From positions 62,001-126,000 of IMG/VR virus record IMGVR_UViG_3300050821_002957: a stretch of 64,000 bases of DNA; one strand, 5' to 3'. The notes under the pieces were generated by a model that saw nothing but the letters and a program-made list of their open reading frames with translations, made no database searches and was not told the origin of the DNA. Of this stretch, positions 44,688 to 63,594 are shown piece after piece. The position numbers and the translations under genes were made by a program. The number at the start of each line of letters is the position of its first letter. Positions within the stretch are counted from its first letter, which is position 1.

Positions 44688-44762
44688 TGGAGCGAAGAGT
44701 GGGAGTCGAACCCACCTACACTTGATTGGCAACCAAGGGCACAGCCGCTATACCATCCTCGC
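44688..44762 (-). tRNA. tRNA-Gly(GCC)
   Basis: Cloverleaf; anticodon loop TT-GCC-AA; U73; encoded CCA. Confidence 0.93.
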
Positions 44763-45128
44763 ATACCTACGCTTTCGACCTTTGCCTCTATTCAGGCTAC
44801 CATAAGTCGGCGTCAAACTATCACAACAAGGACAAAGCAATTCCAAATTTGACTCTGATGAATCTTCCGAATTGCCATCGATATGATTCACAACGAGAGG
44901 GATCTTCCCAGTCGTAGGATTCACTTCTGCCCACCCACACTTACAACATTTTGAGTCATACTTCTCGAACAAGTAGCGCCGCACATGAGCACTAATTTGT
45001 TCACTCACCATCGAGCCAGATTCCTCTCCCCGTTTCCACCTTGCGATGTACTCTGTGAATTGAAATCTCTGCTGACAGCGGTAGCTACAATAGACATCCG
45101 CTGCTCTTGTACAGGGCGTGCGTAGCAC
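44748..45128 (-). CDS. HNH endonuclease (start uncertain, possibly decaying)
   Basis: CCKCG...LVVNHIDGN..D....NL.LLCP.C; stop codon lies inside tRNA-Gly(GCC). Confidence 0.8.
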   Translation of the reverse strand: MLRTPCTRAADVYCSYRCQQRFQFTEYIARWKRGEESGSMVSEQISAHVRRYLFEKYDSKCCKCGWAEVNPTTGKIPLVVNHIDGNSEDSSESNLELLCPCCDSLTPTYGSLNRGKGRKRRYARMV

Positions 45129-45223: not shown

Positions 45224-45231
45224 AATAAAAT

Positions 45232-45534: not shown

Positions 45535-45574
45535 GAGGACCATAGTACCAAAACAAAGGGTCTATGTCAAGAGC

Positions 45575-45790
45575 CTACTTGATCCATCGAGCGGCTGGCT
45601 TTGGATGGGAATCCCGATATTGTCTGCGCCACTCAGCTTCATCTGCATCCGTCGCTGGCTTCATGACAACGTTTGTGCATCCGCAGACGTTCAGAAAACA
45701 TCCGCCAGCGATCAACGTCTTTCGAGCTTCGTCCAGCGAATGGATCAAATCTGGCTGATCACGTCCAGAAACTTCAATCAAAAATTTCAT
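45575..45790 (-). CDS. hypothetical protein
   Basis: MKFLIEVSG...; ATGA overlap. Confidence 0.55.
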   Translation of the reverse strand: MKFLIEVSGRDQPDLIHSLDEARKTLIAGGCFLNVCGCTNVVMKPATDADEAEWRRQYRDSHPKPAARWIK

Positions 45791-45987
45791 GGCTCTCGCT
45801 TTCGCAAACCCAATGTGAGAAAATGTCCCAGGCCAACCCACATGACTTTCGAGTAGTGAGCGTATCCCTTTGCATGAGTCCCCATGATCAAGTTCGTCAA
45901 AAAAGGGAGAACGAGCATGACCCCAAGAAATGCGAAGACCCAATACAAAATATGATAAAGTAGTAGGCCGAAGCCGATCTGAAGCAT
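45787..45987 (-). CDS. small membrane protein
   Basis: Hydrophobic 66 aa; GGAG Shine-Dalgarno. Confidence 0.55.
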   Translation of the reverse strand: MLQIGFGLLLYHILYWVFAFLGVMLVLPFLTNLIMGTHAKGYAHYSKVMWVGLGHFLTLGLRKREP

Positions 45988-46014
45988 AATAATCTCCAGT
46001 CCAAGAATACCTTA

Positions 46015-47004: not shown

Positions 47005-47021
47005 ATGTGTTCTATTCTCTC

Positions 47022-47471
47022 TTATTTTCCGGCGTTGTCAAGCAACTCTCGGATTTTTTCTGGCACAAGTTTCGGGTCCAATACTATCATCCGGCTAGGA
47101 AACTGAAGAGTCCCCTTTCGCAGGAGTGACGGTTCGTCATCTGGTGACCAATTATCGTTCATTTCTACGCCCTGTACTGAGATTCGATAGTCGGCAGTAT
47201 CATAGTCTTCGTAAACGTTTTCTTGAGTGACAGGATCACGCCCTTTCCATCGCCGTGAGGTTTTTGGTATGACCTTAAGTGCCAGCACCTTGCCTAACTG
47301 GAGAGCGGCACACCGTCCTAGAGCGTGTCCATAGACGATGATTGAACCAATCTCAACCTTCTGCCCGATCTTATCGAAAACATCCGGTGCCTCCTTTTCC
47401 GGCTTGATTTCGTCTACTTCCTTGGCTGTAATCTCTAAAATTTTGTGGACTTTCCGATGGTCGAGTTTCAT
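47022..47471 (-). CDS. hypothetical protein (SH3/YopX-like)
   Basis: D..GQ.VE.G..IVY motif. Confidence 0.65.
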   Translation of the reverse strand: MKLDHRKVHKILEITAKEVDEIKPEKEAPDVFDKIGQKVEIGSIIVYGHALGRCAALQLGKVLALKVIPKTSRRWKGRDPVTQENVYEDYDTADYRISVQGVEMNDNWSPDDEPSLLRKGTLQFPSRMIVLDPKLVPEKIRELLDNAGK

Positions 47472-47827
47472 ACTCTTTTCCGCACTACAATGACGTTAAT
47501 ATCTGCTGCCATTGACTTTGGATCATTCATCTTCGGAATGTCAGCGACTTCTTTGTACCGACCCAGGATCTCACCGTCGTCGGTAATCACGATGTAATCC
47601 TGTTCCCATCCCAAGTCTTTAATAACCGCCTGGAGAGCAAACGACAGCGTGAATGGATCGACACCCATAAACTTACGAGAGATTTCTTTGACGTTAGCTT
47701 CATGGACATCATCGTCCACAAACCATCGGATAATCTTCTCGTATGCTTCTTGAATCTGCTTGTATTCGGTCTCTTCATCGACCTTTTTGAGCTTGGTGAA
47801 AAAGTGGTCAATTTGATCTTGGGTCAT
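47468..47827 (-). CDS. hypothetical protein
   Basis: Leaderless ATG 6 nt after extended -10 TGG-TACAAT. Confidence 0.65.
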   Translation of the reverse strand: MTQDQIDHFFTKLKKVDEETEYKQIQEAYEKIIRWFVDDDVHEANVKEISRKFMGVDPFTLSFALQAVIKDLGWEQDYIVITDDGEILGRYKEVADIPKMNDPKSMAADINVIVVRKRV

Positions 47828-47845
47828 CAATTTATTGTACCACAA

Positions 47846-47882
47846 AATACAAAACGGGATGGTTCCGACACCATCCCGTTCG
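47846..47882 (-). terminator. intrinsic terminator after the MVP gene
   Basis: AACGGGATGGT/ACCATCCCGTT stem followed by TTGTATTT. Confidence 0.8.
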
Positions 47883-47906
47883 ATCAAACCAGAACGAAGA
47901 AAGGAA

Positions 47907-50495: not shown

Positions 50496-50538
50496 AGTTG
50501 CTTTCCTTTTGAACAGCTTGAAAATCGGCTGCTCCCCA

Positions 50539-50568
50539 ACTATAGCTCTTCATCCAAAAAAATGTCAA
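50539..50568 (-). promoter_or_regulatory. sigma70 promoter of the MVP gene
   Basis: TTGACA-18-TATAGT; AAAGGA Shine-Dalgarno before the ATG. Confidence 0.75.
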
Positions 50569-50631
50569 CTGAAATTTTTCGCTAAATGCAAGATTCTAAT
50601 GATACATCTAGATTATTAGATGCAACTAATT

Positions 50632-50778
50632 ATGAACATCACCGATCTGCACTTTGAGATCGGGACGCAGCGAAACGTGCATGGCAGGTTCTTCGACGGT
50701 ATAGTGATCGTCATCCTCTGTGGTACTTTGGATCTGTACCGCAAGTACTATAATCGCATCCTTCGGGAGTACCTGTAA
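50632..50778 (+). CDS. 48-aa hypothetical protein divergent from MVP
   Basis: MNITDLHFEIG...; preceded by GATACATCTA and TAGATGCAACTA boxes. Confidence 0.4.
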   Translation: MNITDLHFEIGTQRNVHGRFFDGIVIVILCGTLDLYRKYYNRILREYL

Positions 50779-50927
50779 CTCTTTTCTAAGTTGAGCTACG
50801 GTCATTTCCTAATTGTTTTTAAACTCCGGTCGATGAGACTATTTAGTTATGCATACCGAATATTGCGACAACGGACACCTTTGTGTATTCCAAGAAGACG
50901 GAGCGCCGGTAATGATTTTAGAAAAAC

Positions 50928-51293
50928 CTATAGATTTTCTAATGTTATTAGGGGTGGATCAAGCAATTTGCACCGACTCGTATCCACCAGAAACTCTTGT
51001 TCTTTCGGAGCACCGTTCAATTCCAAAAGAGTGTCCAGACGAGAAAAGTCCGTCCAAATCTCACCAGGATATGACGGGTGAAGCGGAATCGTAATACCCT
51101 GTTGCTTTAGACAATCCAGATACGTGTAGCCACCAACGAACGTGTGCCAATAGACGCCTCGCCTCGGATCTTTGATGATGAGATAACAATCTTCGTCTGT
51201 CTCGCCATATCCAATGCAGCGACCCAAATCAAAACCCATCAAAATTGGTTCGTTGAAATGGAGCTTGGCTTCGTCATGAAGATTCTGTTGCAT
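50928..51293 (-). CDS. conserved phage hypothetical protein
   Basis: RCIGYGE...DCYLI...WHT.VGG motif. Confidence 0.65.
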   Translation of the reverse strand: MQQNLHDEAKLHFNEPILMGFDLGRCIGYGETDEDCYLIIKDPRRGVYWHTFVGGYTYLDCLKQQGITIPLHPSYPGEIWTDFSRLDTLLELNGAPKEQEFLVDTSRCKLLDPPLITLENL

Positions 51294-51634
51294 TAGCAGT
51301 TTCCGTGCGGCTGATCATCATCTAGTGAAGGCGACAACCAATCAAAAACGTATCGTACAAAATCGTCGGCGCTGTGTGTATCGTTCTTTTGGTCGTATGC
51401 TTCACTCAACTGAATCAACTGAGGGACTGAAATGTATTGTTGCATTTGACCTCTTTACTTATGATCGTCTACAAACATATTCAAAACTTTACTGTACGCC
51501 GGGAGTGTTATTTGATACCACTTGTCCCGATGGTATTGTGAGAGGTTCGACCAACCCGGAGCGTCCTGTGCAAACGTGTTCCGATGTTCCTCGTATGTCA
51601 ATTCGGCATAAGTGTAATCCTTGTCCATAAAATT

Positions 51635-51722
51635 TGGCGGAAGGAGAGGGAGTCGAACCCTCAAGCCCTTTCGGAACGACTCTTTTCGAGAGAGTCCCCG
51701 TCACCCATCGGTGTGCCCTTCC
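51635..51722 (-). tRNA. tRNA-Ser(CGA)
   Basis: ACTCT-CT-CGA-AA-AGAGT; long V-arm; G73; CCA. Confidence 0.9.
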
Positions 51723-51724
51723 AT

Positions 51725-52165
51725 TTAAAAAATTCCTAAAACCTTCTGGCGCTTTGCTGGTGCTTGGGACGGATTTTCCAATTTCTTCTTTGCTTCGGCC
51801 TGCCCTTTTTGAAGTCGATCAAGAGCCGCTTTGGTCTCTTGAAATTTTAACTCAGCATCGTCCATGCGCTTTTGTAGCTCATCTCGTGTCGCCTCGTGCT
51901 GACCAATGATCACATCACGATTTGTATTTCCTTCCTTGATCAAAGTTTCACGAGTTTTTTCCATCTCTACCTGGACAACTTTCGGAATCGATTTAATACT
52001 TCGATCCATGTCATCCGCAGCCACGAACAGCGAAATAACAAGAAAAACAACAATGAAAATCAGAACCGATGCCATTACTGCCGGGATTACATAAAGATAA
52101 CGCCCAATCAGATCATCGATACTAACAACAAGATTTCTCCAGACATTCAATAGCCAGCTTCTCAT
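51725..52165 (-). CDS. TM plus coiled-coil protein with late promoter
   Basis: CTAAATA then ATG at 52165; one TM segment then a coiled coil. Confidence 0.6.
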   Translation of the reverse strand: MRSWLLNVWRNLVVSIDDLIGRYLYVIPAVMASVLIFIVVFLVISLFVAADDMDRSIKSIPKVVQVEMEKTRETLIKEGNTNRDVIIGQHEATRDELQKRMDDAELKFQETKAALDRLQKGQAEAKKKLENPSQAPAKRQKVLGIF

Positions 52166-52173
52166 GTACCTAT

Positions 52174-52458
52174 TTAGTGTTTGAGAATCCAATAATGGTT
52201 ACACCAACCGTGAAGATATGACCGACGAGGCTCAGGGGCGTAGCTGTAATGAGCATCACTCCATCCGACCTTCATATACCGATTGGCAAGCTCGGCCTTG
52301 TCGTTTGTTTTGAGACCGTCACCAACTTGCTTATTGAGAAGAATAGAAATGCTACCACTGCCACCAGAATAATCCAATAAATAAGCATCGATGAAATGTT
52401 CCAAATCATCGACCAATTTTTTGTTGTACTTCGGAACGCTTTCAGGACTTGTTGCCAT
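52174..52458 (-). CDS. hypothetical protein
   Basis: 94-aa ORF in the tRNA-interspersed operon. Confidence 0.6.
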   Translation of the reverse strand: MATSPESVPKYNKKLVDDLEHFIDAYLLDYSGGSGSISILLNKQVGDGLKTNDKAELANRYMKVGWSDAHYSYAPEPRRSYLHGWCNHYWILKH

Positions 52459-52783
52459 CTACCACCCACTTCCCCGGCTGATACGAATTCTTTGATTTCG
52501 GATCAATGAAAACGATGTTGACTCGCTTCGCATTCGAGCCGCTGCCACAAAGCACATACTTTACGCCTTTGGAGTCGATCTTCATGCGAAATCCACTATG
52601 CGATTTTTGCAAAGAGCGCAGTCGAGCGTGCTTACCTTTACATCGGTTTTCATAGTATTCCATCACAATCTCTGCTGCCCAACCAGATGCTTTCGACGAA
52701 CCACAACTGATTTCCAGCGGACTTTCGCAGTCAATCTCCCAGCCGTCTTTCTCGAACATCTTGAGGGCTTCAGATGACATCAT
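52442..52783 (-). CDS. hypothetical protein
   Basis: GWEI.CESPLEI...S.ASG.AA motif. Confidence 0.65.
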   Translation of the reverse strand: MMSSEALKMFEKDGWEIDCESPLEISCGSSKASGWAAEIVMEYYENRCKGKHARLRSLQKSHSGFRMKIDSKGVKYVLCGSGSNAKRVNIVFIDPKSKNSYQPGKWVVDGNKS

Positions 52784-53013
52784 AGGTATTGACTCATTAT
52801 GTCCACGCCGTCAGCAATGAGGCGCATACCATCATCAATATGCTCGACCGCATCGTCCATCGAATTTAGAATGTCTTCCAAATCGGAAACCAGCGCCCGG
52901 AGCTTGTCACAATCATCTGTCAACTTGACCTTCATTTTTTCGATAGCTTCAAGTTGCTTCAATATTTTACTGCGTTGCTTTGCAGTCATCTTCGGCAAAC
53001 GCTCGATTCGCAT
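52780..53013 (-). CDS. coiled-coil hypothetical protein
   Basis: AAGGA Shine-Dalgarno; MRIERLPK... Confidence 0.6.
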   Translation of the reverse strand: MRIERLPKMTAKQRSKILKQLEAIEKMKVKLTDDCDKLRALVSDLEDILNSMDDAVEHIDDGMRLIADGVDIMSQYL

Positions 53014-53027
53014 AATTTCCTTTATTT

Positions 53028-53118
53028 TGGCAGAGGGAGTCGGAATTGAACCCACGCATCCCTTTTGGAGATGGCCTCCCGCTTCCAACGGGGCACATTA
53101 CCACTCTGTCATCCCTCT
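53028..53118 (-). tRNA. tRNA-Ser(GGA)
   Basis: Loop TT-GGA-AG; long V-arm; G73; CCA. Confidence 0.88.
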
Positions 53119-53121
53119 GTA

Positions 53122-53322
53122 TTATACATCTTCATGGTTTACTGTCAACGTGCATGGAACCACTTTGCACTTCTTCCAACGATTTGCACATGCCGACGCC
53201 GTATTCTTCTTGGAAAAGATTTTGGCGTCTTCTAGCGGCACCATACGATAGCTACTACAATGAAGCCAACGATTCATACTATGGTTCCAGACGACGTAAA
53301 CTTGATGCTTGACGTTCTTCAT
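53122..53322 (-). CDS. hypothetical protein
   Basis: 66-aa ORF filling the inter-tRNA gap. Confidence 0.55.
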   Translation of the reverse strand: MKNVKHQVYVVWNHSMNRWLHCSSYRMVPLEDAKIFSKKNTASACANRWKKCKVVPCTLTVNHEDV

Positions 53323-53328
53323 AAATTT

Positions 53329-53419
53329 TGGCGGAAGGTGGAGGGATCGAACCTCCGCATCCTTTTTGGGGCTGGCCTCGGTTTAGCAAACCGGCACATT
53401 GCCACTCTGTCAACCTTCC
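53329..53419 (-). tRNA. tRNA-Ser(GCT)
   Basis: Loop TT-GCT-AA; long V-arm; G73; CCA. Confidence 0.92.
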
Positions 53420-53425
53420 GTATTT

Positions 53426-53743
53426 TCAATCAAATTCTTTGTTCACAGAATACATGAACTCTAAAAAATCGGCCCAATTCATCTTGATCGACAACTTTGA
53501 TTCATCGACCCATTGAGCATGTCTACTACCTTTCTTCAACAGGTACATCCATTGTGATCCCAGAATACCCATGTCGTTCGGTTCAACTTCTACCGCCCAT
53601 CCATGCAGAATACACCACCTGTACACACGAAGAAAAATATCTTCATGCCTAGACAATGCAAATTTGAACGACGAAAGGAACGCCCAGGCCCTTCCGATGC
53701 TCGTAAACAAGACCGCCGCCAAAAATGCAAGTGCGTACATCAA
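53426..53743 (-). CDS. hypothetical protein with hydrophobic N-terminus
   Basis: 105 aa, overlapping start. Confidence 0.55.
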   Translation of the reverse strand: MMYALAFLAAVLFTSIGRAWAFLSSFKFALSRHEDIFLRVYRWCILHGWAVEVEPNDMGILGSQWMYLLKKGSRHAQWVDESKLSIKMNWADFLEFMYSVNKEFD

Positions 53744-53961
53744 ATGTCTGATGCCTTTCGTTGAGTCAAATAGTTCCGCTCGTGCTCTTTCAAATAAGCA
53801 CCGTCGATACGATTTGCAAAGACCGACTTTACTTGCCAGCCATCTTCATCCTTGAGACGCAAGTATTTATCGAGAACAGCGAACTGCTCGGGAATCCACG
53901 CAATCTGTGAGATCGTCCCCTTGGTCATCGTACATTGTCTAAAAAATTGTTGCTGTGCCAT
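53740..53961 (-). CDS. hypothetical protein
   Basis: QC...K.....AWIP..FA...R.ASDI motif; TGATG coupling. Confidence 0.6.
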   Translation of the reverse strand: MAQQQFFRQCTMTKGTISQIAWIPEQFAVLDKYLRLKDEDGWQVKSVFANRIDGAYLKEHERNYLTQRKASDI

Positions 53962-54146
53962 CACACTTTCACCAAACTTTCCAGCACCCAACCCCGAATG
54001 CCATTTAATCGTGCCTCGTAGATAGGAGCATAACCGGGTAACAAAGGTTCAGCATTGTTACGAAAAACTTGTCCCGGCTCTAGAAACACTTCTTTACTGT
54101 CTACGATTGTACCATCCCAATCTGTGTAAACTTCTTCAAGCCTCAT
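53961..54146 (-). CDS. hypothetical protein
   Basis: 61 aa, coupled to neighbours. Confidence 0.55.
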   Translation of the reverse strand: MRLEEVYTDWDGTIVDSKEVFLEPGQVFRNNAEPLLPGYAPIYEARLNGIRGWVLESLVKV

Positions 54147-54543
54147 TTAGAACCTTTAAATTCTTGTGATACGTCATGTGCTGATGAGCCTTTTCGGTTC
54201 CTTCAATCGGCCAACCACTTCCTACTTCAGTCGCCCAGCCAGGAGGACAAATCCACTTGTTACAATGTTCATCAAAGAACCAACCTTCCTTAAGCAATTC
54301 TTCGGCCATACGCTGCTCACTCAACTGTTTCTTCCAGGAGTCCACAAGCGCCATATGCTTCCGAATCCAACGCATGAAAAAGATGCCCTTGTCTTCAGCA
54401 CGAAAAATTCCTGTGCCGGTATCAGAAGCGGCGACCGGGAATTCAAATCCGTCTGCCGTCTTGTACCACAGTTCTCCCTCTCGGAAATACTGGAATGTCA
54501 CGTTCTGTTGGACTCTCTCTTTCAATGTCATATTCACTCCCAC
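54136..54543 (-). CDS. conserved phage hypothetical protein
   Basis: V.F.Y.R.G.LWY.T..GF.FPV...D.G...F...DK...FMRWIRK motif. Confidence 0.7.
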   Translation of the reverse strand: MGVNMTLKERVQQNVTFQYFREGELWYKTADGFEFPVAASDTGTGIFRAEDKGIFFMRWIRKHMALVDSWKKQLSEQRMAEELLKEGWFFDEHCNKWICPPGWATEVGSGWPIEGTEKAHQHMTYHKNLKVLNEA

Positions 54544-55178
54544 ATAATGCCACCACCATTCAGGTAGATGTCCGTATAAACTTCTTGTTCTTTCGCTCGC
54601 AACGCCTCGTCAAAATCTCTGGCGATCTGTTCCTTTATTTCTTTCTCTGCCTGCTTTCGTGTCTCAATCTCCAAAGCGATCCTCTTAAATGTTTCAAACT
54701 CGCTCTGCTGAAGCTCCGACTTACTCATCGGTGGACTCGGCTTCCGGTTCCCAATTTCAATGGCGATCTTCCGTAACGATTCAAATTCGCTCCGCTTCAT
54801 TCTCATGGTCGGAGTAATTTGGATGATTTCGTCGGGATCTTCAAGCTCTATCGCCACCACACGGAAAATTTCTTCTCGTTTCAAATTCTCCAGCATCTCA
54901 ACGAATTCTGCGTGCTCTCCAGCTTTCCTGCCGCATGTCGCACACAATCTAGTGTCTAAGCTAGGGAAAGATGACTGATCGTCATAATCAAGAAGTAGAC
55001 AATCACAGGCTTTCATTCTAGCCTCCTTTATTTCCACTTCGGTGTTCATCGGAGTCGCCAAACAAATTCCACGATGATGACATTGATCCCAGGTCGGGCA
55101 ATTTACCTGTCCCTTTGCGTCGATACAATACTTTCTCAATTGTTTTCCTTTTACATCTGGAACAACGGAGTCACCCAA
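54534..55178 (-). CDS. hypothetical protein (start uncertain)
   Basis: Internal repeat SEFESLRKIAIEI / SEFETFKRIALEI. Confidence 0.55.
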   Translation of the reverse strand: MGDSVVPDVKGKQLRKYCIDAKGQVNCPTWDQCHHRGICLATPMNTEVEIKEARMKACDCLLLDYDDQSSFPSLDTRLCATCGRKAGEHAEFVEMLENLKREEIFRVVAIELEDPDEIIQITPTMRMKRSEFESLRKIAIEIGNRKPSPPMSKSELQQSEFETFKRIALEIETRKQAEKEIKEQIARDFDEALRAKEQEVYTDIYLNGGGIMWE

Positions 55179-55525
55179 CGTTCAACCTGATACCTAGCAA
55201 AAACTACTGCACCGATCACTCTAATATTCGTCTGTGATTTTTCTTGAACTTCTCTACCATATTGTCTCATCGATCCGCCCGTTGTCCAGACATCATCGAC
55301 AATCAGTACAGTACTACTTCCCGGCGTCCAATATTTTTGCATTTTCTCGGCCAACTTCAACCCACCCCTCGGGACACCTTCACAGTAACCAAATGGATCT
55401 AGCTTCTGAAACAACAGGTACGCAATACACGTCCAATCATCGTCAGTTAGCGCATCACATTCAATTTTGTACGACGCTTCCATGCCACTTGTCAGCCGAA
55501 AACTTCCCATCTGAAAAAGATTCAT
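55151..55525 (-). CDS. type I phosphoribosyltransferase (orotate PRTase-like)
   Basis: G.F.L.SG; GVPRGG; PRPP loop VLIVDDVWTTGGSM. Confidence 0.85.
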   Translation of the reverse strand: MNLFQMGSFRLTSGMEASYKIECDALTDDDWTCIAYLLFQKLDPFGYCEGVPRGGLKLAEKMQKYWTPGSSTVLIVDDVWTTGGSMRQYGREVQEKSQTNIRVIGAVVFARYQVERWVTPLFQM

Positions 55526-55619
55526 CTCACCTTCTCCACGGCTTCGGCGCAATGATGATCAACACCAAAAGTATCGTCCAGAAAAACAACAAAATTGCAT
55601 CATCTTCTCTCATAAATTT

Positions 55620-55704
55620 TGGTAGCCAAGGACGGACTCGAACCGTCACGTCTTTCGACAACGCATTTTAAGTGCGCCGGGTCTGCCAGTTCCCCCACTC
55701 GGCC
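55620..55704 (-). tRNA. tRNA-Leu(TAA)
   Basis: GCGCA-CT-TAA-AA-TGCGT; V-arm; A73; CCA. Confidence 0.92.
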
Positions 55705-55707
55705 ATG

Positions 55708-55920
55708 TTATTTGATGATCTCGAATGGTGACAATTTATCCATTCGTGGACCCATCAAATTCTTTTGCATCCATTCGGGATCAGCAGCCATTTTCATTTC
55801 GACCAACTGATACACACGAAGCGCACTGATGATCACACGTTGCGGCGACAATTCTTTATCAACCGCCAGACCCATCAACACGCCAGCTTCACGCTCTTCA
55901 AAATCAACTGTGACTTTCAT
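55708..55920 (-). CDS. small RHH-like protein
   Basis: MKVTVDF...LA....SP..VI..AL pattern. Confidence 0.5.
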   Translation of the reverse strand: MKVTVDFEEREAGVLMGLAVDKELSPQRVIISALRVYQLVEMKMAADPEWMQKNLMGPRMDKLSPFEIIK

Positions 55921-55926
55921 AAAATT

Positions 55927-56012
55927 TGGTGGGCAAGGTGGGAGTCGAACCCACATGTCCTTACGGACGGTGGCTTTTGAGGCCACTGCGTCTGCCATTC
56001 CGCCACTCGCCC
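55927..56012 (-). tRNA. tRNA-Leu(CAA)
   Basis: GTGGC-CT-CAA-AA-GCCAC; A73; CCA. Confidence 0.93.
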
Positions 56013-56329
56013 AAACTTTTTAGTGCTCGTCGGTACGCACAGCAGCTACAACTTTCACTGCTACGCTTTCCCAGGCGGCTTTGTTTTGATCCGACAGTCT
56101 TAACCACGGACAGGTCAATCCCACGCCTGCTGCAAATGCGTCATATGCGATTTCACCCAAAGTTTTCATACATCATCTCCTGGATCAAATCTAACACATC
56201 CACAGCCATCAATCAAGCAGGGAAGATCGCACGAGCCACACATACAACACATTCGATGCTCGTCATTCCGATGTCCACACCGAACGCACAACAGCGCCCA
56301 ATATTCTTCAACCGTTTCCCACTCAGGCA

Positions 56330-56521
56330 TTATCCTTTCCGTATGCTAAAGTACCCAGGACCAAATTTTCCATTCAACACGTCAAGAATTTCATTCAACG
56401 AAACCGGCTTCCCTCGAAAATCATGACGCTCACAACTACATCCAAAGCAACAAGAAAATCCATTGCCGGGATAATCGTTTAGATGTATTTCCTTCGTCCT
56501 GTCAAATACTATTGCTTGCAT
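56330..56521 (-). CDS. hypothetical protein
   Basis: GAGGA Shine-Dalgarno, 63 aa. Confidence 0.55.
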   Translation of the reverse strand: MQAIVFDRTKEIHLNDYPGNGFSCCFGCSCERHDFRGKPVSLNEILDVLNGKFGPGYFSIRKG

Positions 56522-56539
56522 ACTTCCTCTTCAAAATTT

Positions 56540-56623
56540 TGGTGGCCCCGGAGAGATTCGCACTCTCACGTCTTTCGACACTGGTTTCTAAGACCAGCGG
56601 GTCTGCTGTTCCCCCACAGGGCC
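56540..56623 (-). tRNA. tRNA-Leu(TAG)
   Basis: CTGGT-CT-TAG-AA-ACCAG; atypical T-loop TGCGAAT; CCA. Confidence 0.9.
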
Positions 56624-56630
56624 AAAATCA

Positions 56631-56936
56631 TTAATCGTAGCTCGAAAAATCTACTCGAAGCCTCTCGAACTCGATATCCTGCCACTTCAAATTCGACAAA
56701 TCCGTCATAGATTCACCGAAGCTCACATCACAATTACATGAGCATCCACCTGAGTGGCACGAAAAAACCATTCCTTCAGCATCTACACCAATGCCTTCAT
56801 AGCAATGGTGGCCGTAACCCTCGTCCCAATTGTTGATCTCTTCTACGATGACCAACTCTTTTTCAGAACCATGATCAATAAAGGTGCTCTTCGGCAACTT
56901 GCCATAGTTCTTCTTCACATACGTCTGTATCGTCAT
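56631..56936 (-). CDS. hypothetical protein
   Basis: GAGG Shine-Dalgarno; GCSC motif. Confidence 0.55.
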   Translation of the reverse strand: MTIQTYVKKNYGKLPKSTFIDHGSEKELVIVEEINNWDEGYGHHCYEGIGVDAEGMVFSCHSGGCSCNCDVSFGESMTDLSNLKWQDIEFERLRVDFSSYD

Positions 56937-57693
56937 ATTCGTCTGCCTCCGAATCGTCAAATAGCTTTTCGTGTACTTCACCCAACTTTCTCTCCAATGC
57001 CGCTTCAGACCGGAGCCAACGAGTTTTTACTCCATGACAATTTGAACAGCGAATCCTAAGATTCTCAAGTTCATTATTCATAGGATTACTATCAATATGA
57101 TCCAACTCAAGCGGAGCCGGATATCCTCTCCAGTCACTAATTCCACAATCCTCACATTTTCTTTGCTTGATACCTTCTTGTATCAAACGTTCTCGCAAAG
57201 CCGCTGAACTTATTGTGGAACCAATACACAAATATTCTGTAATTGCTTTTCGTTTATACGGCGGTTTCTCAATAAAATGAGAATGTTCTACCCCCAGTTC
57301 TATAACTCTACGACGCAATTTGTTAAAATTGTTATTTCCTGGCTGGATCTTAACCAACGTACACAATTCTAACCATGTCTGTGATGCAGCTACCAATGGA
57401 ACCAAATATTCCTTTGTATATTTTCTCTTCGCACCCAGTGACTTAATAAGCGCCGCATCTAGATGTTCAAAAGAAATCCCAAAAAATTTAGCACGCCCTC
57501 GAAGATAGGTATACCGAGAACCACACACCTGCACTCCCAAAACTAAGCAAACTTCACGCCACGTTTGATTGCCAGAAATTGCTCTACTCAATTCATCAAA
57601 AGAATATTTACGATTACGTGTGTGGTAACATGGTTGACACGTTTTCGCTTTTCCTGTTGATATGATCCTCCCACAATGCTGACATGTATTCAT
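56875..57693 (-). CDS. HNH homing endonuclease with tandem N-terminal DNA-binding repeats
   Basis: CEDCG..DW.G....LELDHID.N..NN.LENL...C.NCH; two KY(S/T)...L...QTW.E.C repeats. Confidence 0.88.
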   Translation of the reverse strand: MNTCQHCGRIISTGKAKTCQPCYHTRNRKYSFDELSRAISGNQTWREVCLVLGVQVCGSRYTYLRGRAKFFGISFEHLDAALIKSLGAKRKYTKEYLVPLVAASQTWLELCTLVKIQPGNNNFNKLRRRVIELGVEHSHFIEKPPYKRKAITEYLCIGSTISSAALRERLIQEGIKQRKCEDCGISDWRGYPAPLELDHIDSNPMNNELENLRIRCSNCHGVKTRWLRSEAALERKLGEVHEKLFDDSEADEYDDTDVCEEELWQVAEEHLY

Positions 57694-57729
57694 ATCAGCA
57701 TTTAGACACCTAATTTCAGATGTCAAATA

Positions 57730-57815
57730 TGGTCGCCGAGGACGGATTTGAACCGTCACGTCCTTGCGGACACTAGGCCCTCAACCTAGCGTGTCTGCCG
57801 TTTCACCACTCGGCG
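57730..57815 (-). tRNA. tRNA-Leu(GAG)
   Basis: CTAGG-TT-GAG-GG-CCTAG; A73; CCA. Confidence 0.93.
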
Positions 57816-57850
57816 AAAAATGTGCGGGAGCAATGGCTCAACCGCTAATG

Positions 57851-57926
57851 TCAGGAAGGTGAGATTTGAACTCACGAATTTCTCCAATCCGAATGGAGTG
57901 GGGCAACCAGACTCCCCTTCTTCCTG
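57851..57926 (-). tRNA. tRNA-Pro(CGG) with A37, A8 and no encoded CCA
   Basis: CTCCA-TT-CGG-AT-TGGAG; C1-G72; A73. Confidence 0.82.
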
Positions 57927-57930
57927 AAAA

Positions 57931-58021
57931 TGGACCTGAGCATGGGCGGTGCTGTCCTAAGACCCACCATGATTCTCCAGCACCGTGTTTGCTGGCGGCA
58001 TTCCTTTATGCCTACATCAGG
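57931..58021 (-). ncRNA. tRNA-like RNA with expanded T-loop and CCA end
   Basis: Acceptor CCTGA(T)G/CTCAGG-T-CCA; D-arm GGCAT/ATGCC; arm CCAGCA/TGCTGG; T-stem CATGG/CCATG enclosing 21 nt. Confidence 0.7.
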
Positions 58022-58106
58022 ATTTAACTCGGAATGTTGGTAGACCGTTCGGGTAGAAATCTATCCCAACGACGGTCCCTTACTGATTTCATAACCAACA
58101 TAAAAA

Positions 58107-58198
58107 TGGCAGAGGGTAGAATAATCGAAATCCCATCCGGCTCATCACCGGAGCGACGGTTTTCAAGACCGTTGGCACACCAAGCGCCCGTACCCTCT
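58107..58198 (-). tRNA. tRNA-Ser(TGA), can fold as an 8/4 acceptor/T-stem tRNA
   Basis: ACGGT-CT-TGA-AA-ACCGT; AGAGGGTA/TACCCTCT; GGAT/ATTC; G73; CCA. Confidence 0.85.
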
Positions 58199-58205
58199 AA
58201 ACTCG

Positions 58206-58367
58206 TTAAATGTCGTATGCACAACTGCGTTCACAATCAGGACAACAATTACACATCGTCACAGAGTTGGGATGAATTTCTTCGTCAAATGGGCAGGGAT
58301 GTAACTCGACTGTACCCTCATGACCACACCCACTCGGATGCGTACAATAATAATTGTTATCAGTCAT
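58206..58367 (-). CDS. Cys-rich small protein (start approximate)
   Basis: AAGGAAG Shine-Dalgarno; HPCPFDEEI....CNCC.DC...CA.DI motif. Confidence 0.6.
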   Translation of the reverse strand: MTDNNYYCTHPSGCGHEGTVELHPCPFDEEIHPNSVTMCNCCPDCERSCAYDI

Positions 58368-58386
58368 ACAACTTCCTTTCAAACTT

Positions 58387-58463
58387 TGGTTGCCAGGATG
58401 GGACTCTCCCTTACGGGCCGACGATCTCAACGTTGTGCGTCTGCCAAATTCCGCCACCCGGCA
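58387..58463 (-). pseudogene. tRNA-Leu(GAG)-like gene lacking the 5' half of the T-arm
   Basis: Intact acceptor, D, anticodon and V arms and CCA; the V-arm is followed directly by AGAGTCCCAT with no GGTTC. Confidence 0.7.
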
Positions 58464-58469
58464 ATAAAC

Positions 58470-58848
58470 TTGTGGGAGCTTTTCACTCCACTCGACTATT
58501 CTGACACATCAGTACAGCTACCCTGCTTACGGTCGTTACTCTGAGCCGCCGTAAGAACAAATTTAAATGAGTACGAACAAATAATCGAATAGTCGGATTA
58601 ATACCGCTGCGTCTACCATTCCGCCAACACTCGAAAATTCTGCTTTCGCATGTCGAGTGCCCTGGACTTGAACCAGGACGCCCCAGAGGGACGGCGGTGC
58701 CTGATAACCAACTACCTACGGCTCGTACTCAAACTCATTGGCTTCGGGTAATGACGACATAAATGCAGTCTTCGCCTCTCTTCGATCCCATCAGAGTTAT
58801 CCTGATGAAATGCCTCACGCCGCTTATTAGACGGCCTACATCAAACTG
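58470..58848 (-). ncRNA. structured RNA containing a circularly permuted tRNA-Leu (core 58601-58704)
   Basis: 3' half (anticodon 3' strand, V-arm, T-arm, acceptor, A73) precedes the 5' half (acceptor, D-arm, anticodon 5' strand); the flanks base-pair. Confidence 0.8.
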
Positions 58849-58850
58849 TG

Positions 58851-58931
58851 TAGCCAAGGAGGGACTCGAACCCTCAACCCTTGCGGGAACCGCTTCTGAG
58901 ACGGCTGCGTATGCCATTCCGCCACTCGGCT
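58851..58931 (-). tRNA. tRNA-Leu(CAG) with A37 and no encoded CCA
   Basis: GCCGT-CT-CAG-AA-GCGGT; V-arm; A73. Confidence 0.9.
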
Positions 58932-59097
58932 AAAATGAAGGTTGCCCAGTCCACAATACAGGTCATACCTACAATCCCTCTAGCTTCGATAAGCGGAGCA
59001 CACTTCGCTCGACGCTTGATGTCAGCCTACTTCGATTCGCACGAAGAACCCCTGAATCCAAATCAGGAAGGATACTCTTTCCCCATAGACTGAAACT

Positions 59098-59173
59098 TGG
59101 TCAGCGTGCTCAGATTTGAACTGAGAATTTACCGCCCCAAACGGCAAGTGATACCAGATTTCACCACACACTG
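59098..59173 (-). tRNA. tRNA-Pro(TGG)
   Basis: TGCCG-TT-TGG-GG-CGGTA; C1-G72; A73; CCA. Confidence 0.92.
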
Positions 59174-59267
59174 GAATTTGTTCATGGTGTACGCTGTCAC
59201 TACAGACACACACGAAACGATATTTTTACTGTTTTGATTTAGCTGTCTCGAAGCAACTCAGGGAGAG

Positions 59268-59363
59268 TTACGACAGCAAACTAGGTAGGCTCGACGGGGA
59301 CAACGGCAAACCTACCACAGTAAGTGGCGATGAGCTTGGCGTTGATAAGAGTACGTTTTTCAT
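59268..59363 (-). CDS. 31-aa Leu/Ser/Pro-rich leader peptide of the tRNA operon
   Basis: MKNVLLSTPSSSPLTVVGLPLSPSSLPSLLS*; GGGA Shine-Dalgarno; first element after the promoter. Confidence 0.7.
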   Translation of the reverse strand: MKNVLLSTPSSSPLTVVGLPLSPSSLPSLLS

Positions 59364-59400
59364 TTTCTTGTTTCCCAGTCGATCTTTAATGATCTGACAC

Positions 59401-59434
59401 TATTTATACTAGCAGTCTTTTGGAATCCTGTCAA
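59401..59434 (-). promoter_or_regulatory. overlapping sigma70 and T4-late promoters of the tRNA operon
   Basis: TTGACA(59434-59429)-17-TAGTAT(59411-59406), overlapping TATAAATA(59408-59401). Confidence 0.8.
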
Positions 59435-59667
59435 GAGGTCTTTTCAGAATTCTTTTTCATAGCATTGAGAATTCGCTGGCGCACCATTCTCATAGAGCCG
59501 TGCCCGAACCCACACGCCCAGTCGGTGTACTTCTGGCCGCATTGGGAGCAAAAGTTTCGCATCGCACGCTCCATCTCTTCGACGGTCAAATCACCTTGGT
59601 ATTCGGCGGCTTGTTCCAATTCGGCGCAGTTGGTCGTAAAATCAAAACTGGTCTTCTCTTCGGTCAT
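59431..59667 (-). CDS. hypothetical zinc-binding protein
   Basis: CSQC......ACG..H; GGAG Shine-Dalgarno. Confidence 0.6.
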   Translation of the reverse strand: MTEEKTSFDFTTNCAELEQAAEYQGDLTVEEMERAMRNFCSQCGQKYTDWACGFGHGSMRMVRQRILNAMKKNSEKTS

Positions 59668-59954
59668 TTTGTTGCGACTCCTGGAGGAAATTTACAATCT
59701 TTGAGCTTAACACCAAACAGGTCACGAATAGGCACGCCACCTTTTGCTGTACACGTCTTGATCTCTTCTTCAAAATGCTGCCGGTACAGGTCGGCCTCGA
59801 TGTCATGCTTGCTGGTAGAAGGATGATTACTGAGAAGATTCACCAAAGCAAAAACCAGAACAACGACACAACAAATTACCAGACCGGACCATCCAATGAT
59901 GCGAACGTTTCTTATGTCTTGTTCTGTGAAAGGCGATCCAGCCATCAGTCCCAC
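59664..59954 (-). CDS. single-TM membrane protein
   Basis: TM segment plus C..KGG.P motif. Confidence 0.6.
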   Translation of the reverse strand: MGLMAGSPFTEQDIRNVRIIGWSGLVICCVVVLVFALVNLLSNHPSTSKHDIEADLYRQHFEEEIKTCTAKGGVPIRDLFGVKLKDCKFPPGVATK

Positions 59955-60244
59955 ACCATAGAAACCAAAAAGACCGCCCAGGCAATCAACGCAAAAACTT
60001 GAATGCCACCACCGATCCAGACGCCAGCACCGAAGACCAAAAACTTTTCGATGAAGTTGGATGGATCAAGAATTTTATAGACGATCAACCAGATCCAAGT
60101 AGGAACTAATGCAAGTACCAATGTACCAAGAGTCCAAAGCCATTGTTCCAATCTCTTTTTGAGAGACGGTCCACGACGAGGGCTAATGGTAACATACTGA
60201 CGATTTAATTGTGGCATTATCTCTTCCTGAATAAAAATACGCAT
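59945..60244 (-). CDS. membrane protein
   Basis: Several hydrophobic segments. Confidence 0.6.
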   Translation of the reverse strand: MRIFIQEEIMPQLNRQYVTISPRRGPSLKKRLEQWLWTLGTLVLALVPTWIWLIVYKILDPSNFIEKFLVFGAGVWIGGGIQVFALIAWAVFLVSMVWD

Positions 60245-60347
60245 AGACCGTCATACAAAAATGGGAAGCACCGTCGAGAAGAACGGATGATCGAATTGCC
60301 AATCAACCTTTACATGTTCCCAATGACGAAGTGCTTCCCACATAAAA

Positions 60348-61013
60348 CTACTTTCGGCTGCTGCGAGACGAACTGGATGAGGCAGGCGATCTCGACGGTG
60401 ATGGTGTCGATGGGCTGCGTGTCATACCGCCACTTTGAGAGCCAAGCTGCGGCTTGCCAGTCGGCTGCGATGACGCAGGACCACGAGTCATTCCACCGGC
60501 TTGAGAACCGAACTGAGGCTTTGTGGTCGTGTTGTTCACCGTGGTGTTATTCACGACTGTCGCAGGACCACGAGTCATTCCACCGGCTTGCTGTCCGAAT
60601 TGGGGTTTGCCGTCTTTCACAGGCGCAGTGTACAGAGGCTTGGAAGGCGCATTCGCAACGACCACCGTGCGCTGTGCAGGCGGAACGATGCGATCATGCT
60701 GGTAATTGTTAACGATGGTTGTGCGATATGTGGTCGAAGTGTGGAACACGCCGCCGACATAGTAACCAGGAACGCCACCGTACATCACCGAGGGATAGAA
60801 GACGTGGCCGGGACCGTAGTAACCGTTGACGCCATTCAGAATCGCCGCCGTCAAAATTGCATCGGCGATCACGTTGTCGGGATTGTAACCGGGATCGTAG
60901 ACCGGAGCACCTTGTCCTTGTGCGACCGGCTGTTGAACGTAAGTCGTGCAGGCGGTGCTCAGAAACACAAGCGCCATGAGTGTTGCGATAGCGAATTTGT
61001 TTGTGGAGGTCAT
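60348..61013 (-). CDS. predicted lipoprotein with KPQFGxQAGGMTR repeats
   Basis: Lipobox-like LSTAC; three repeats; Ser-rich tail; AAGGA Shine-Dalgarno. Confidence 0.7.
   Translation of the reverse strand: MTSTNKFAIATLMALVFLSTACTTYVQQPVAQGQGAPVYDPGYNPDNVIADAILTAAILNGVNGYYGPGHVFYPSVMYGGVPGYYVGGVFHTSTTYRTTIVNNYQHDRIVPPAQRTVVVANAPSKPLYTAPVKDGKPQFGQQAGGMTRGPATVVNNTTVNNTTTKPQFGSQAGGMTRGPASSQPTGKPQLGSQSGGMTRSPSTPSPSRSPASSSSSRSSRK
60474..60590. repeat. 30-bp perfect direct repeat within the lipoprotein gene
   Basis: CGCAGGACCACGAGTCATTCCACCGGCTTG at 60474 and 60561. Confidence 0.85.
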
Positions 61014-61992: not shown

Positions 61993-62459
61993 GATTGTTG
62001 TTTCTCCAAATACAATATTGCTTCTTTTAAAATCTTGGGATCATCTTGAACATTCCCCAACAATACATTACATGTTAGACACAAAATCCCTCTGACCTTG
62101 TTAGTTACGTGAGAATGATCCACATTAGGAATCGTTTTCCTAGTGACTCGATCCAATACCACCTTACAAATTGCACAGCAGCCACCTTGTTCTGCAAATA
62201 TCAAATCGAAAGTTTCTGGTGTAATTCCATACTTATGCATTCGTCTAGATTTTGGACCGTTTACCTTACGCCAATGTGCAAGGTAACTTTTATGTCTAGG
62301 CGTTTGTTTCGTTGCTCGTCGGCACGCCACACACTTTTTTGTGCTTACATATCGAGTTGTGGCACCACACTTCACACACGCATGTCCATCAAACGTTTCT
62401 AGTGGTTTTTTCGGTCTGTATTGTTTACACGGTTTGTATTCTTTCATTTTTTTCTTCAA
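61989..62459 (-). CDS. Endonuclease VII-family (His-Me finger) homing-type endonuclease
   Basis: KYGIT...F......QGGCCAIC...VDHSH.T.KVRGILC..CN..LG...D. Confidence 0.88.
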   Translation of the reverse strand: MKKKMKEYKPCKQYRPKKPLETFDGHACVKCGATTRYVSTKKCVACRRATKQTPRHKSYLAHWRKVNGPKSRRMHKYGITPETFDLIFAEQGGCCAICKVVLDRVTRKTIPNVDHSHVTNKVRGILCLTCNVLLGNVQDDPKILKEAILYLEKQQS

Positions 62460-63594
62460 GCAAACTGTCGAACCTAGGACCGCCCTCCACTAAATGAGCC
62501 ACGTATCCAGCGTCTTCGGGACCGATCTTTTTTGGTCGAATCGCAAACAGCACTGCCGGATGATAAACTGTCGTCGGCACCAACGGTATAGAAGATGGCA
62601 TCGAAATTCCAGTTTCAGCCTTCACATTCAAATTGTAAAAAGCATCGAACACAATGAAGACCGGCCATTGCGTATCGGTACGAACGACGGCACGCATTTT
62701 CACTTTTTTCAATGCATCTTCCAATTTCAAAGGGTCCAAAGTCCGATGCTGCCCCAAGTGCAACATGACGATCTTGATGTCTGAATCACCCTTTGTCGAA
62801 TGAGTCTGCAAGAATTTATACACCGACTGTGACAACTTCCCGGCTGGCGACGAATTGAACAATTTTTCCGCTGTCTGATACGCCCATCCAACGGCTTTCG
62901 CTACGGTTCCATGTGTCGGACTTTCGGTGATCAATTTCATGTACCGATCTTCATTGGTCTTGGTCGCCAGGGGAAGCATCAGGCCGACATCCTTCGACTT
63001 AGTTCGTTCGTTGTATCCTTCATTGAACAGGCGTAAAACCGAAGACCAAGAATTACCGCCAACTTGTCCCAGTGTCTTTCCTGATTTCTTGGCACCGGCT
63101 TTCAATGAAATTTTCTCGAAGATGTACTTGTCAGTTTTTACGGTAATATCGGCTTTGGTTCCAGTGTTGTTTGAAATTCCATCAACATCAATCTCAAGTT
63201 TGTTGTCGATGTTGTTCTGATACATCGCTTCGGCCAGAGCTTCAATACGAGGAGAGTTGACATAAGAAGCAGCAGCATCACCGACACGAGCCAGGAGTTT
63301 CAGGTCCAATGCTCTTAAGTCGGCCATCATGCGTTTACCAAGATTCAGCAGGAAGACGATTTTGTCTTTAGCTGTACCGCCCATGTCCATTTTAACTTGA
63401 GACTTGGTGCTGCCTTTTGGTGTGAGAGGAGCCTTCTGCATGACCTTCAGAGCTTTCATGACATCTGAAGACGTGACTTTGCCGATTTGACCGTTTGGCT
63501 TACGGAGAATGAGTTTGGCTACGATGGCGGCACCAAGCACACCTTCTGCTAGATTGCCTTCGTTGACTACTTTGTCTTTTTGTTTGAGTGCCAC
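62425..63594 (-). CDS. late protein with putative PD-(D/E)xK-like fold
   Basis: GN.AEG..GAA, TKADI and ISLK motifs; late promoter CTAAATA at 63606-63600; N-terminal VNE|G site. Confidence 0.6.
   Translation of the reverse strand: MALKQKDKVVNEGNLAEGVLGAAIVAKLILRKPNGQIGKVTSSDVMKALKVMQKAPLTPKGSTKSQVKMDMGGTAKDKIVFLLNLGKRMMADLRALDLKLLARVGDAAASYVNSPRIEALAEAMYQNNIDNKLEIDVDGISNNTGTKADITVKTDKYIFEKISLKAGAKKSGKTLGQVGGNSWSSVLRLFNEGYNERTKSKDVGLMLPLATKTNEDRYMKLITESPTHGTVAKAVGWAYQTAEKLFNSSPAGKLSQSVYKFLQTHSTKGDSDIKIVMLHLGQHRTLDPLKLEDALKKVKMRAVVRTDTQWPVFIVFDAFYNLNVKAETGISMPSSIPLVPTTVYHPAVLFAIRPKKIGPEDAGYVAHLVEGGPRFDSLLEEKNERIQTV

Follow-up and report, generated by a model that had tools for sequence, protein, structure and literature searches.

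A Leu/Ser/Pro-rich leader reading frame conserved ahead of the Pro/Leu/Ser tRNA region of soil and peat phages: a candidate translated cis-regulatory leader

We analyzed a 64,000-nucleotide (nt) stretch of DNA, positions 62,001 to 126,000 of the 405,631-bp soil virus record IMGVR_UViG_3300050821_002957, which we call the window. Between a promoter-like site and the first gene of a region of Pro, Leu, and Ser tRNAs, we observed a short open reading frame (ORF) made up mostly of Leu, Ser, and Pro (L/S/P) codons. The ORF recurs at the same place in five diverged relatives, where its frame, composition, Shine-Dalgarno (SD) sequence, and overlapping RNA helices are conserved with it. We read the ensemble of promoter, SD-ATG, 31- to 35-codon L/S/P-rich ORF, overlapping helices, and tRNA-Pro(UGG) as what appears to be a single module that heads this tRNA region in phages of about 370 to 405 kb from soil and peat. 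It is possible, and is the account that we tentatively favor, that the module is a translated cis-regulatory leader that senses the decoding of Leu, Ser, and Pro codons, with either sign of regulation. Its main parts in the window are as follows.

59406..59434, minus strand: near-consensus sigma-70-type promoter-like site, TTGACA-17-TAGTAT with a TG extension
59364..59399, minus strand: 5' untranslated region (UTR) with a small hairpin (GATC...GATC) and an SD-like GGGA at 59376-59373, from sequence and folding
59268..59363, minus strand: leader ORF, MKNVLLSTPSSSPLTVVGLPLSPSSLPSLLS, 31 codons, of which 22 are L/S/P
59098..59173, minus strand: tRNA-Pro(UGG), called by ARAGORN and Rfam, the first gene past the leader in the window and in all five relatives

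The leader ORF runs from an ATG at 59363 to a TAA at 59270-59268. It contains 8 Leu, 9 Ser, and 5 Pro codons, and its final 13 codons are exclusively L/S/P. All six Leu codons, five of the six Ser codons (TCT is missing), and three of the four Pro codons (CCC is missing) are used. These counts reproduce those of a first-pass annotation that a model had made from the letters alone: a 31-codon minus-strand ORF at 59363-59268 with 22 L/S/P codons, an L/S/P-only run of 13 at the end, and the same codon variety. The promoter-like site at 59434-59406 likewise agrees with its placement of the ORF just downstream of the promoter of the tRNA array.

We compared the ORF with the 891 six-frame ORFs of at least 25 amino acids (aa) in the window. 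Its L+S+P fraction of 0.71 ranks first, about 5.6 standard deviations out from the background (mean, 0.25; standard deviation, 0.08), and the runner-up reaches 0.59. Given the peptide and the codon usage of the phage, chance alone would have the ORF of the window use all six Leu codons with a probability of 0.04 and cover every one of the 11 isoacceptor classes found among the downstream tRNAs with a probability of 0.05. These codon-coverage probabilities are no more than suggestive; the observation draws its strength from composition and position combined. The base composition of the ORF (C, 0.26 to 0.32; G, 0.19 to 0.21) also differs from the background of its strand (C, 0.21; G, 0.26). Over window positions 52000-58000 in the tRNA region, the GC skew of the plus strand is -0.19 to -0.25, and the leader ORF is the opposite, with more C than G on the transcribed strand.

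Searches with the leader peptide found no match in Pfam, nothing significant in PHROG (best E = 0.17), and no informative neighbor in the Atlas (scores of at most 0.73). The peptide of a relative had no tblastn match among 50,697 phage records. We rejected a decayed tRNA or transfer-messenger RNA as the identity of the leader, as there was no ARAGORN or Rfam call inside 59174-59434. Nothing in the genome requires an alternative genetic code, and an ORF on the opposite strand was discarded on inspection because the reverse complements of L/S/P codons put stops there.

The relatives were reached through a 389-aa protein encoded at 62425..63594. It has 26 relatives that are 28 to 68% identical, and the contigs of these gave four syntenic loci: L012 (a 370-kb contig), L013 (400 kb), L014 (72 kb), and L033 (8 kb). 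The conserved order leading into the Pro/Leu/Ser tRNA region is the 389-aa gene, a gene of about 165 aa, a gene of about 220 aa, and a gene for a small membrane protein. A DNA pattern of the conserved core found one further variant, on five peat-metagenome contigs (the L016 group). The resulting six variants (window, L012, L013, L014, L016, and L033) form two deep groups from soil and peat metagenomes. In all five relatives, a small ORF of the same kind, with SD, ATG, and frame retained, lies between a conserved promoter and tRNA-Pro(UGG).

L012, 13166-13261: leader ORF, 31 codons
L013, 13115-13219: leader ORF, 34 codons, peptide MNTTFKLSPSSSLPSLSLVELPVLPSSLPSSLLS
L014, 13498-13605: leader ORF, 35 codons
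L016, 524-628: leader ORF, 34 codons
L033, 3386-3484: leader ORF, 32 codons

The L/S/P content of the ORF is 0.69 to 0.74 in all six variants. To put this into perspective, we estimated how far the phages have diverged at neutral sites. Their orthologous neighbor proteins are 46 to 66% identical and have the same codon at only 30 to 46% of conserved four- and sixfold residues; thus, neutral sites are saturated. We then compared four segments pairwise: the upstream 75 nt, the ORF, the spacer, and tRNA-Pro. The nucleotide identity of the ORF between variants is 0.63 to 0.96 and is the highest of the four segments in 13 of the 15 pairs. It exceeds that of the tRNA-Pro gene in most pairs (0.89 versus 0.62 for the window and L012; 0.86 versus 0.68 for L013 and L014). 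The spacer between the ORF and tRNA-Pro is 40 to 94 nt long among the variants and 33 to 75% identical. Because it is so divergent and variable in length, recent transfer of the whole module cannot explain the conservation of the ORF. The comparison supports the view that the L/S/P character of the ORF has been held by selection across six diverged phages, and that the ORF has a physical and evolutionary link to the tRNA gene that opens the Pro/Leu/Ser block.

Other searches reached no further variant. The leader is identical in the IMG/VR copies L001/L002 and L006-L009, the ENA contig L010 differs by one single-nucleotide polymorphism in the upstream gene, and there is no leader variation within sequencing runs. 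The region, searched with megablast and blastn against the 50,697 phage records, gave nothing or tRNA matches only. A search of 5.8 billion proteins returned no relative of the adjacent 78-aa protein, and tRNAs are absent from L003-L005, its weak relatives in IMG/VR. In IMG/VR, two DNA patterns drawn from the leader matched the phage of the window and no other; the looser of them found nothing in GTDB genomes. A profile search of IMG/VR with the 389-aa protein returned relatives of only 25 to 29% identity, which are without the leader element. One match of the pattern search in metagenomes, L020, was discarded as a chance match in high-GC DNA, and L023, L031, and L032 were uninformative, with a different synteny or no Pro/Leu/Ser block at the site.

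We asked whether the ORF behaves as a string of codons. Its frame has no stop in any variant, and each of the other two frames has one or two. Differences in ORF length are +3, +6, -3, and -3 nt, and the insertions and deletions in the UTR and spacer are of arbitrary length. Ser is retained across the AGY and UCN boxes (AGC to TCG or TCC, and TCG to AGT), changes that each need two to three substitutions. Among the 35 aligned sense columns, 21 are always L, S, or P, and many swap among these three. Phe is almost absent from the L/S/P columns even though a single transition turns Leu and Ser codons into TTY, and AGY, which is at odds with a pyrimidine-rich pattern, occurs three times per ORF. 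All 11 isoacceptor classes are covered in five of the six variants, with a chance probability of 0.02 to 0.10 per variant given the peptide and the phage codon usage. No variant keeps the fold and loses the frame or the L/S/P bias, the pattern that the first-pass annotation had named as speaking against its proposal; both are retained in all six. We conclude from these alignments that conservation acts on membership in the L/S/P class more than on the particular residue. Synonymous positions in the ORF are far more conserved than those in neighboring genes; thus, RNA structure or codon identity is also constrained.

The initiation signals fit a translated ORF. In the window, the SD and ATG are about 35 nt downstream of the promoter site, and the 78-aa gene upstream (59667..59431, minus strand) ends within the -35 box, which shares bases with its stop codon. 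CTTGACA and TATAAATA are invariant among the aligned relatives. The SD duplex energy of the window leader is -4.2 kcal/mol, versus a median of -3.7 for the long ORFs of the window, and in L013, L014, and L016, where the SD is GGGAG, it is -7.4 to -8.4 kcal/mol. Thus, the strength of the leader SD is equal to or above that of phage genes. In L016 (506-523) and L033 (about 18 nt before 3386), the conserved ATG is preceded, 18 nt upstream, by an extra in-frame ATG that is in the SD or ahead of it. With this ATG and a very short predicted 5' UTR, the start codon and transcription start in these two variants are provisional. Taking frame, substitutions, and SD together, we infer that the leader ORF is very probably translated.

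The leader is also strongly structured. The minimum free energy (MFE) fold of 59400-59174 is a three-way junction of -60.6 kcal/mol (z = -3.1), and none of 200 shuffled sequences folded as well. This agrees with the earlier description of the ORF as lying in a three-way junction. The elements in the window are the following.

59326..59339, minus strand: Px 5' strand (CCAAGCTCATCGCC), an alternative upstream partner of 59319-59306, from a duplex search
59317..59323, minus strand: P1 5' strand TTACTGT, codons 14-16, from folding
59226..59232, minus strand: P1 3' strand ACAGTAA, about 36 nt past the stop codon, from folding
59284..59316, minus strand: P2 hairpin (GGTAGGTTTG / CGAGCCTACC) within the ORF, from folding
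59293..59300, minus strand: anti-SD element (TCCCCGTC) within the ORF, complementary to the SD region, from the RNAalifold consensus
59236..59281, minus strand: P3 hairpin across the stop codon, core GCTGTC/GACAGC, from folding
59181..59216, minus strand: P4 hairpin in the spacer with no U tract after it, from folding

Per-variant folding and duplex searches found P3, P1, Px, and the SD:anti-SD pairing in each of the six variants. The helices are given per sequence, as between the groups they shift and differ in length, and alignment with MAFFT fails for the 3' strands of P1 and P3. P3 varies in a compensatory manner, with GCTGTC:GACAGC in the window, GCTGTT:AACAGC in both L013 and L014, and GCTATCC:GGATAGC in L033; L012 has a G-U wobble. 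The stop codon is part of the P3 stem in the window; in the relatives it falls within the loop or next to it. P1 joins mid-ORF sequence to a G-poor strand 15 to 35 nt past the stop codon, as TTACTGT:ACAGTAA in the window, GGTGGAGTTG:CAACTCCACC in L016, GGTGGAATTG:CAATTCCACC in L033, and GGTGGTGTT:AACACCACC in L014, and has compensatory changes within the L013 group. Px pairs the central strand with upstream ORF sequence at -10.5 to -16.9 kcal/mol. In the five relatives, one strand could enter either Px or P1, so the two would compete. The Px strand of the window (59319-59306) shares only three bases with the P1 strand (59323-59317) and is mostly a P2 strand.

The SD itself has a partner within the ORF. 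GGGA(G) pairs with CUCCC(G) at -11.6 to -16.2 kcal/mol; this pairing is the RNAalifold consensus, appears in the MFE folds of L012, L013, L014, and L033, and would compete with P2. The consensus thus has SD:anti-SD where the MFE fold of the window has the three-way junction, a disagreement that we read as competing folds that the RNA may adopt and not as a refutation. P2, which the first-pass annotation had made one of the three helices of its junction, is strong in the window (z = -3.8) and L012 (z = -4.4) but in those two only; it is not significant in L013, L014, and L016. P4 is likewise present in the window and L012 and absent from L013, L014, and L033. Rfam covariance models gave matches of the tRNA clan only (tRNA and tRNA-Sec) and one weak chance match in 50500-60500, up to E = 1, and tRNA only in the relatives. 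Overall, the predicted fold is retained in outline and offers alternatives that exclude one another, the anatomy that would be expected of a ribosome-operated switch.

Downstream of the leader, tRNA-Pro(UGG) begins after a spacer of 94 nt in the window, and the rest of the region follows.

51635..59092, minus strand: remaining Pro/Leu/Ser tRNA region, 11 further ARAGORN calls among ORFs and internal promoter-like sites

The first-pass annotation had stated that the tRNAs from 59173 to 51635 are exactly Pro, Leu, and Ser isoacceptors. All 12 ARAGORN calls there are indeed Pro, Leu, or Ser, but Rfam agrees on only 11 of them and the "array" is interrupted. The call without Rfam support is a 72-nt "tRNA-Pro(UGG)" at 59021-59092 (minus strand), which the Rfam tRNA model does not recognize. 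Its position holds a bona fide tRNA-Pro(CGG) in L014 and L033, and it may be a degenerate tRNA. Anticodons vary within the family as well. At L012:13516-13598 there is a tRNA-Leu with anticodon CAA where the window has tRNA-Leu(CAG), which together with the absence of Pro(CGG), Ser(UGA), and Leu(UAA) from L012 suggests that anticodons have shifted and tRNAs have been lost. Odd calls also occur inside the Pro/Leu/Ser blocks of relatives, an 88-nt "Asn(GTT)" and "anticodons" of two or four bases (L013:17225-17312 and 16827-16902; L033:4452-4547); these may be pseudogenes or else type II tRNAs whose anticodon loops are unusual.

Contigs from two soil metatranscriptome assemblies match the leader at 59219-59507 and 59102-59368 with 99 to 100% identity, and the second of these links the leader ORF with nearly all of tRNA-Pro. 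In the 5.5 kb compared, the other RNA-library contigs (58728-58967 and 57896-58083) are also in tRNA neighborhoods, and there are none in the 2.5 kb of protein genes upstream. This distribution fits an abundant leader-tRNA precursor, which it suggests weakly. One RNA contig extends past the promoter by about 70 nt on its upstream side, so transcripts may also read through from upstream. The spacers have G-free runs of 11 to 32 nt, and the region is strongly structured in the folds.

If the module is a sensor of L/S/P decoding, it could work in the following way. Host RNA polymerase would start at the near-consensus promoter, and ribosomes would load at the SD in competition with the anti-SD element CUCCC(G) inside the ORF. 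The ribosome would then decode 21 to 25 L/S/P codons, among which almost every isoacceptor class served by the downstream tRNAs is represented. Its position would select the partner of the central strand (the P1 5' strand in the relatives; the adjoining and overlapping strand 59319-59306 in the window), either upstream within the ORF as Px or the G-poor post-ORF strand as P1. Ribosome position would also decide whether P3 forms and whether the SD is open or closed. The resulting fold of the last 40 to 95 nt before tRNA-Pro would set the synthesis, survival, or processing of the tRNA precursor. Candidate outputs are Rho loading on an exposed C/A-rich, G-poor strand and access of RNase E or RNase P. 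One consistent option is a trp-like scheme: a stall in the first L/S/P run would let the central strand pair with the post-ORF strand and hide it, and during fast decoding the ribosome would cover the central strand and leave the post-ORF strand exposed. The net effect would be to couple the supply of phage tRNAs to the current Leu/Ser/Pro decoding capacity of the cell.

Several observations weigh against this reading. The window leader has no hairpin followed by a U tract, and no intrinsic terminator is conserved in the relatives, where a T-rich run follows P1 in L033 only. The first-pass annotation had already seen no U-rich terminator, and our terminator scan agrees. Its attenuator proposal thus keeps a conserved, very probably translated ORF with alternative helices but lacks an intrinsic terminator. 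Synonymous sites in the ORF are nearly as conserved as nonsynonymous ones, so constraint at the RNA level alone could explain the conservation. The six variants belong to two deep groups only, and the counts of covariation are small and carry no column-wise statistics. The RNA-library contigs are without strand and may include DNA. The tRNA region is not compact but extends over 7.5 kb with about 15 interspersed ORFs, including an HNH endonuclease gene, and internal promoter-like sites. Because of these internal promoters, direct control by the leader can extend no further than the first transcription unit of the block. One of them, at 53121-53148 (minus strand), is a perfect 12/12 match to the sigma-70 consensus (TTGACA, 16 nt, TATAAT) directly ahead of tRNA-Ser(GGA). 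The first-pass annotation had suggested scanning related phages for leader ORFs whose codons track the array. The same kind of ORF is present in the five relatives, but the tracking is not strict: the ORF of L012 retains seven codons for Pro(CGG), Leu(CAG), Leu(UAA), and Ser(UGA), none of which is in its array, and the L033 ORF has no CTG although tRNA-Leu(CAG) is present. Nor do other tRNA blocks have such a leader: among 287 small ORFs in the window and related loci, none rich in cognate codons lies ahead of any other tRNA, including the Glu/Gln/His, Met/Val, and Gly blocks.

There are alternatives to a decoding sensor. The leader could be a structured 5' leader of the tRNA precursor that acts in processing, stability, or protection from Rho, with translation generic or incidental and without amino acid sensing; the L/S/P bias would then be a by-product of pyrimidine-rich helix strands. 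We consider this unlikely, though a serious contender. It would account for the recurring helices with compensatory changes, the strong conservation of synonymous sites, the presence of leader and tRNA-Pro on one RNA-library contig, the C-rich, G-poor ORF relative to its strand, and the G-free runs in the spacers. However, a plain YYN pattern predicts about 12% Phe and no AGY, whereas Phe is almost never observed in the L/S/P columns and AGY is used three times per ORF. The frame, the ATG, the SD, and indel lengths in multiples of three are, moreover, all preserved, and the other tRNA leaders of the same phages do without such an element.

Alternatively, the product itself could matter, as a trans-acting, largely uncharged micropeptide of 31 to 35 aa rich in Ser, Pro, and Leu, whose match to the tRNAs is coincidental and whose helices, chiefly SD:anti-SD and the hairpin across the start region, only set the amount of peptide. 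Ten codon columns are invariant, and the motifs SPSSS and C-terminal LLS persist. The SD and start region are sequestered in the MFE folds of L012, L013, L014, and L033, as in tightly controlled small-protein genes, and the missing terminator and the lack of such a leader at any other tRNA block fit as well. Yet many columns interchange L, S, and P instead of holding one residue, and the peptide has no Pfam or PHROG family and no informative Atlas neighbor. P1 and P3 use post-stop sequence beside the tRNA that is not needed to produce a peptide, and it would be an unlikely coincidence for a peptide of about 70% L/S/P to head exactly the sole Pro/Leu/Ser tRNA block. We judge a micropeptide unlikely too, slightly more so than the structured leader. 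That the ORF is a functionless chance frame in an intergenic spacer is hardly credible. Short ORFs are abundant, with 220 of at least 25 aa in the surrounding 14 kb, but this one is an extreme compositional outlier, and its in-frame conservation in six lineages with saturated neutral sites effectively refutes chance.

Outside the Pro/Leu/Ser region, the tRNA blocks are sorted by amino acid in a conserved order: Glu/Gln/His, Met/Val, several protein genes, Pro/Leu/Ser, and then, in the window, Gly. This order was seen in window 44688-59173, L002:788-1541, L012, L013, L014, L031, and L035, with small ORFs and HNH genes interspersed. The Gly tRNAs are at 45223 and 44762, with an HNH-type ORF (45128..44748) between them. 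At 45232-45570 (minus strand), downstream of a promoter-like TTGACA...TACTAT, comes the gene of a predicted membrane protein of 103 aa, with its stop codon directly against tRNA-Gly(UCC). About 9 kb upstream on the same contig and outside the window, L002:496-787 has a promoter-like site and a 265-nt leader followed by tRNA-Met. No Met-rich ORF is present in this leader, which carries a T-arm-like GGTTCGATTCC motif that is possibly a decayed or undetected tRNA. The phage also encodes an 862-aa protein with a major-vault-protein shoulder domain (47907-50495, minus strand), an IF3-like protein (IF3_N plus IF3_C) just outside the window (L011:4653-5192; L012:8648-9187), an R2K-type ATP-grasp protein, a DNA ligase, and an endonuclease VII.

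Short leader peptides are familiar from trpL, hisL, leuL, thrL, ilvL, and pheL, of which thrL and ilvL respond to more than one amino acid. These belong to the transcription attenuators of amino acid biosynthetic operons (see also PMC3082878 and PMC4046918). Like them, the phage module has a short, SD-led 5' ORF rich in codons relevant to the downstream genes and helices with alternative partners that overlap the ORF. Unlike them, it is borne by a phage, its downstream genes are tRNAs and not enzymes, it has no U-tract terminator hairpin, and its regulatory codons are no short run but make up about 70% of the ORF, covering about 11 isoacceptor classes of three amino acids. Because it has no intrinsic terminator and its target is tRNA, we do not file it as a leader-peptide attenuator despite the similar proposed working.

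Leader peptides without a terminator are known: tnaC, which is Rho dependent, and mgtL and mgtP, which sense proline codons. By analogy with these, ribosome position on the short phage ORF would control exposure of downstream RNA without a classical terminator. As in mgtL and mgtP, proline codons would be part of the sensor. The post-ORF strand of the phage leader resembles Rho utilization (rut) sites in being G-poor and C/A-rich, but the leader is far more structured than typical rut regions, and its target is a set of tRNA genes. T-boxes bind uncharged tRNA through a specifier codon and the T-box sequence, independently of translation, and control aminoacyl-tRNA synthetase or amino acid genes. 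They resemble the phage leader in coupling the expression of translation-supply genes to tRNA status, but the leader has no Rfam T-box match.

Phage tRNA genes have usually been regarded as constitutive supplements and, lately, as replacements for tRNAs destroyed by defense nucleases. To our knowledge, how phages set the amount of their tRNAs is essentially not known. When anticodon nucleases cut host tRNAs, phage tRNAs can substitute for them (PMC10264068, PMC11464382, PMC11555353); the parts of these papers available to us concern the tRNAs themselves and not a regulatory leader. A sensor of decoding capacity ahead of such tRNAs would fit the same counterdefense logic. Nothing connects this leader to a defense system, and the anti-defense role that the first-pass annotation proposed is pure inference. 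In full-text literature searching, we found no description of a leader ORF ahead of phage tRNA genes, in line with that annotation's statement that it knew of no such switch. The module may be the first attenuator-like leader peptide over tRNA genes, in which one ORF would sample about 11 Leu/Ser/Pro isoacceptors and feed back on the production or maturation of replacement tRNAs without an intrinsic terminator, a claim that we make a shade more cautiously than that of decoding sensing.

Its conservation, its compactness, and its accessibility to direct tests make the element one of high interest. The module is small (about 230 nt) and has a sigma-70-type promoter, so reporter fusions in a laboratory host could be used even though the phage is uncultured. 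If our reading is true, the low decoding capacity that is sensed could stem from a mismatch of codon usage, from starvation, or from tRNA-cleaving defense nucleases. The leader would add to the few leader-peptide switches without an intrinsic terminator. It would give these phages a ready-made device for tRNA dosage and would extend the leader-peptide principle from biosynthetic operons to the tRNA pool.

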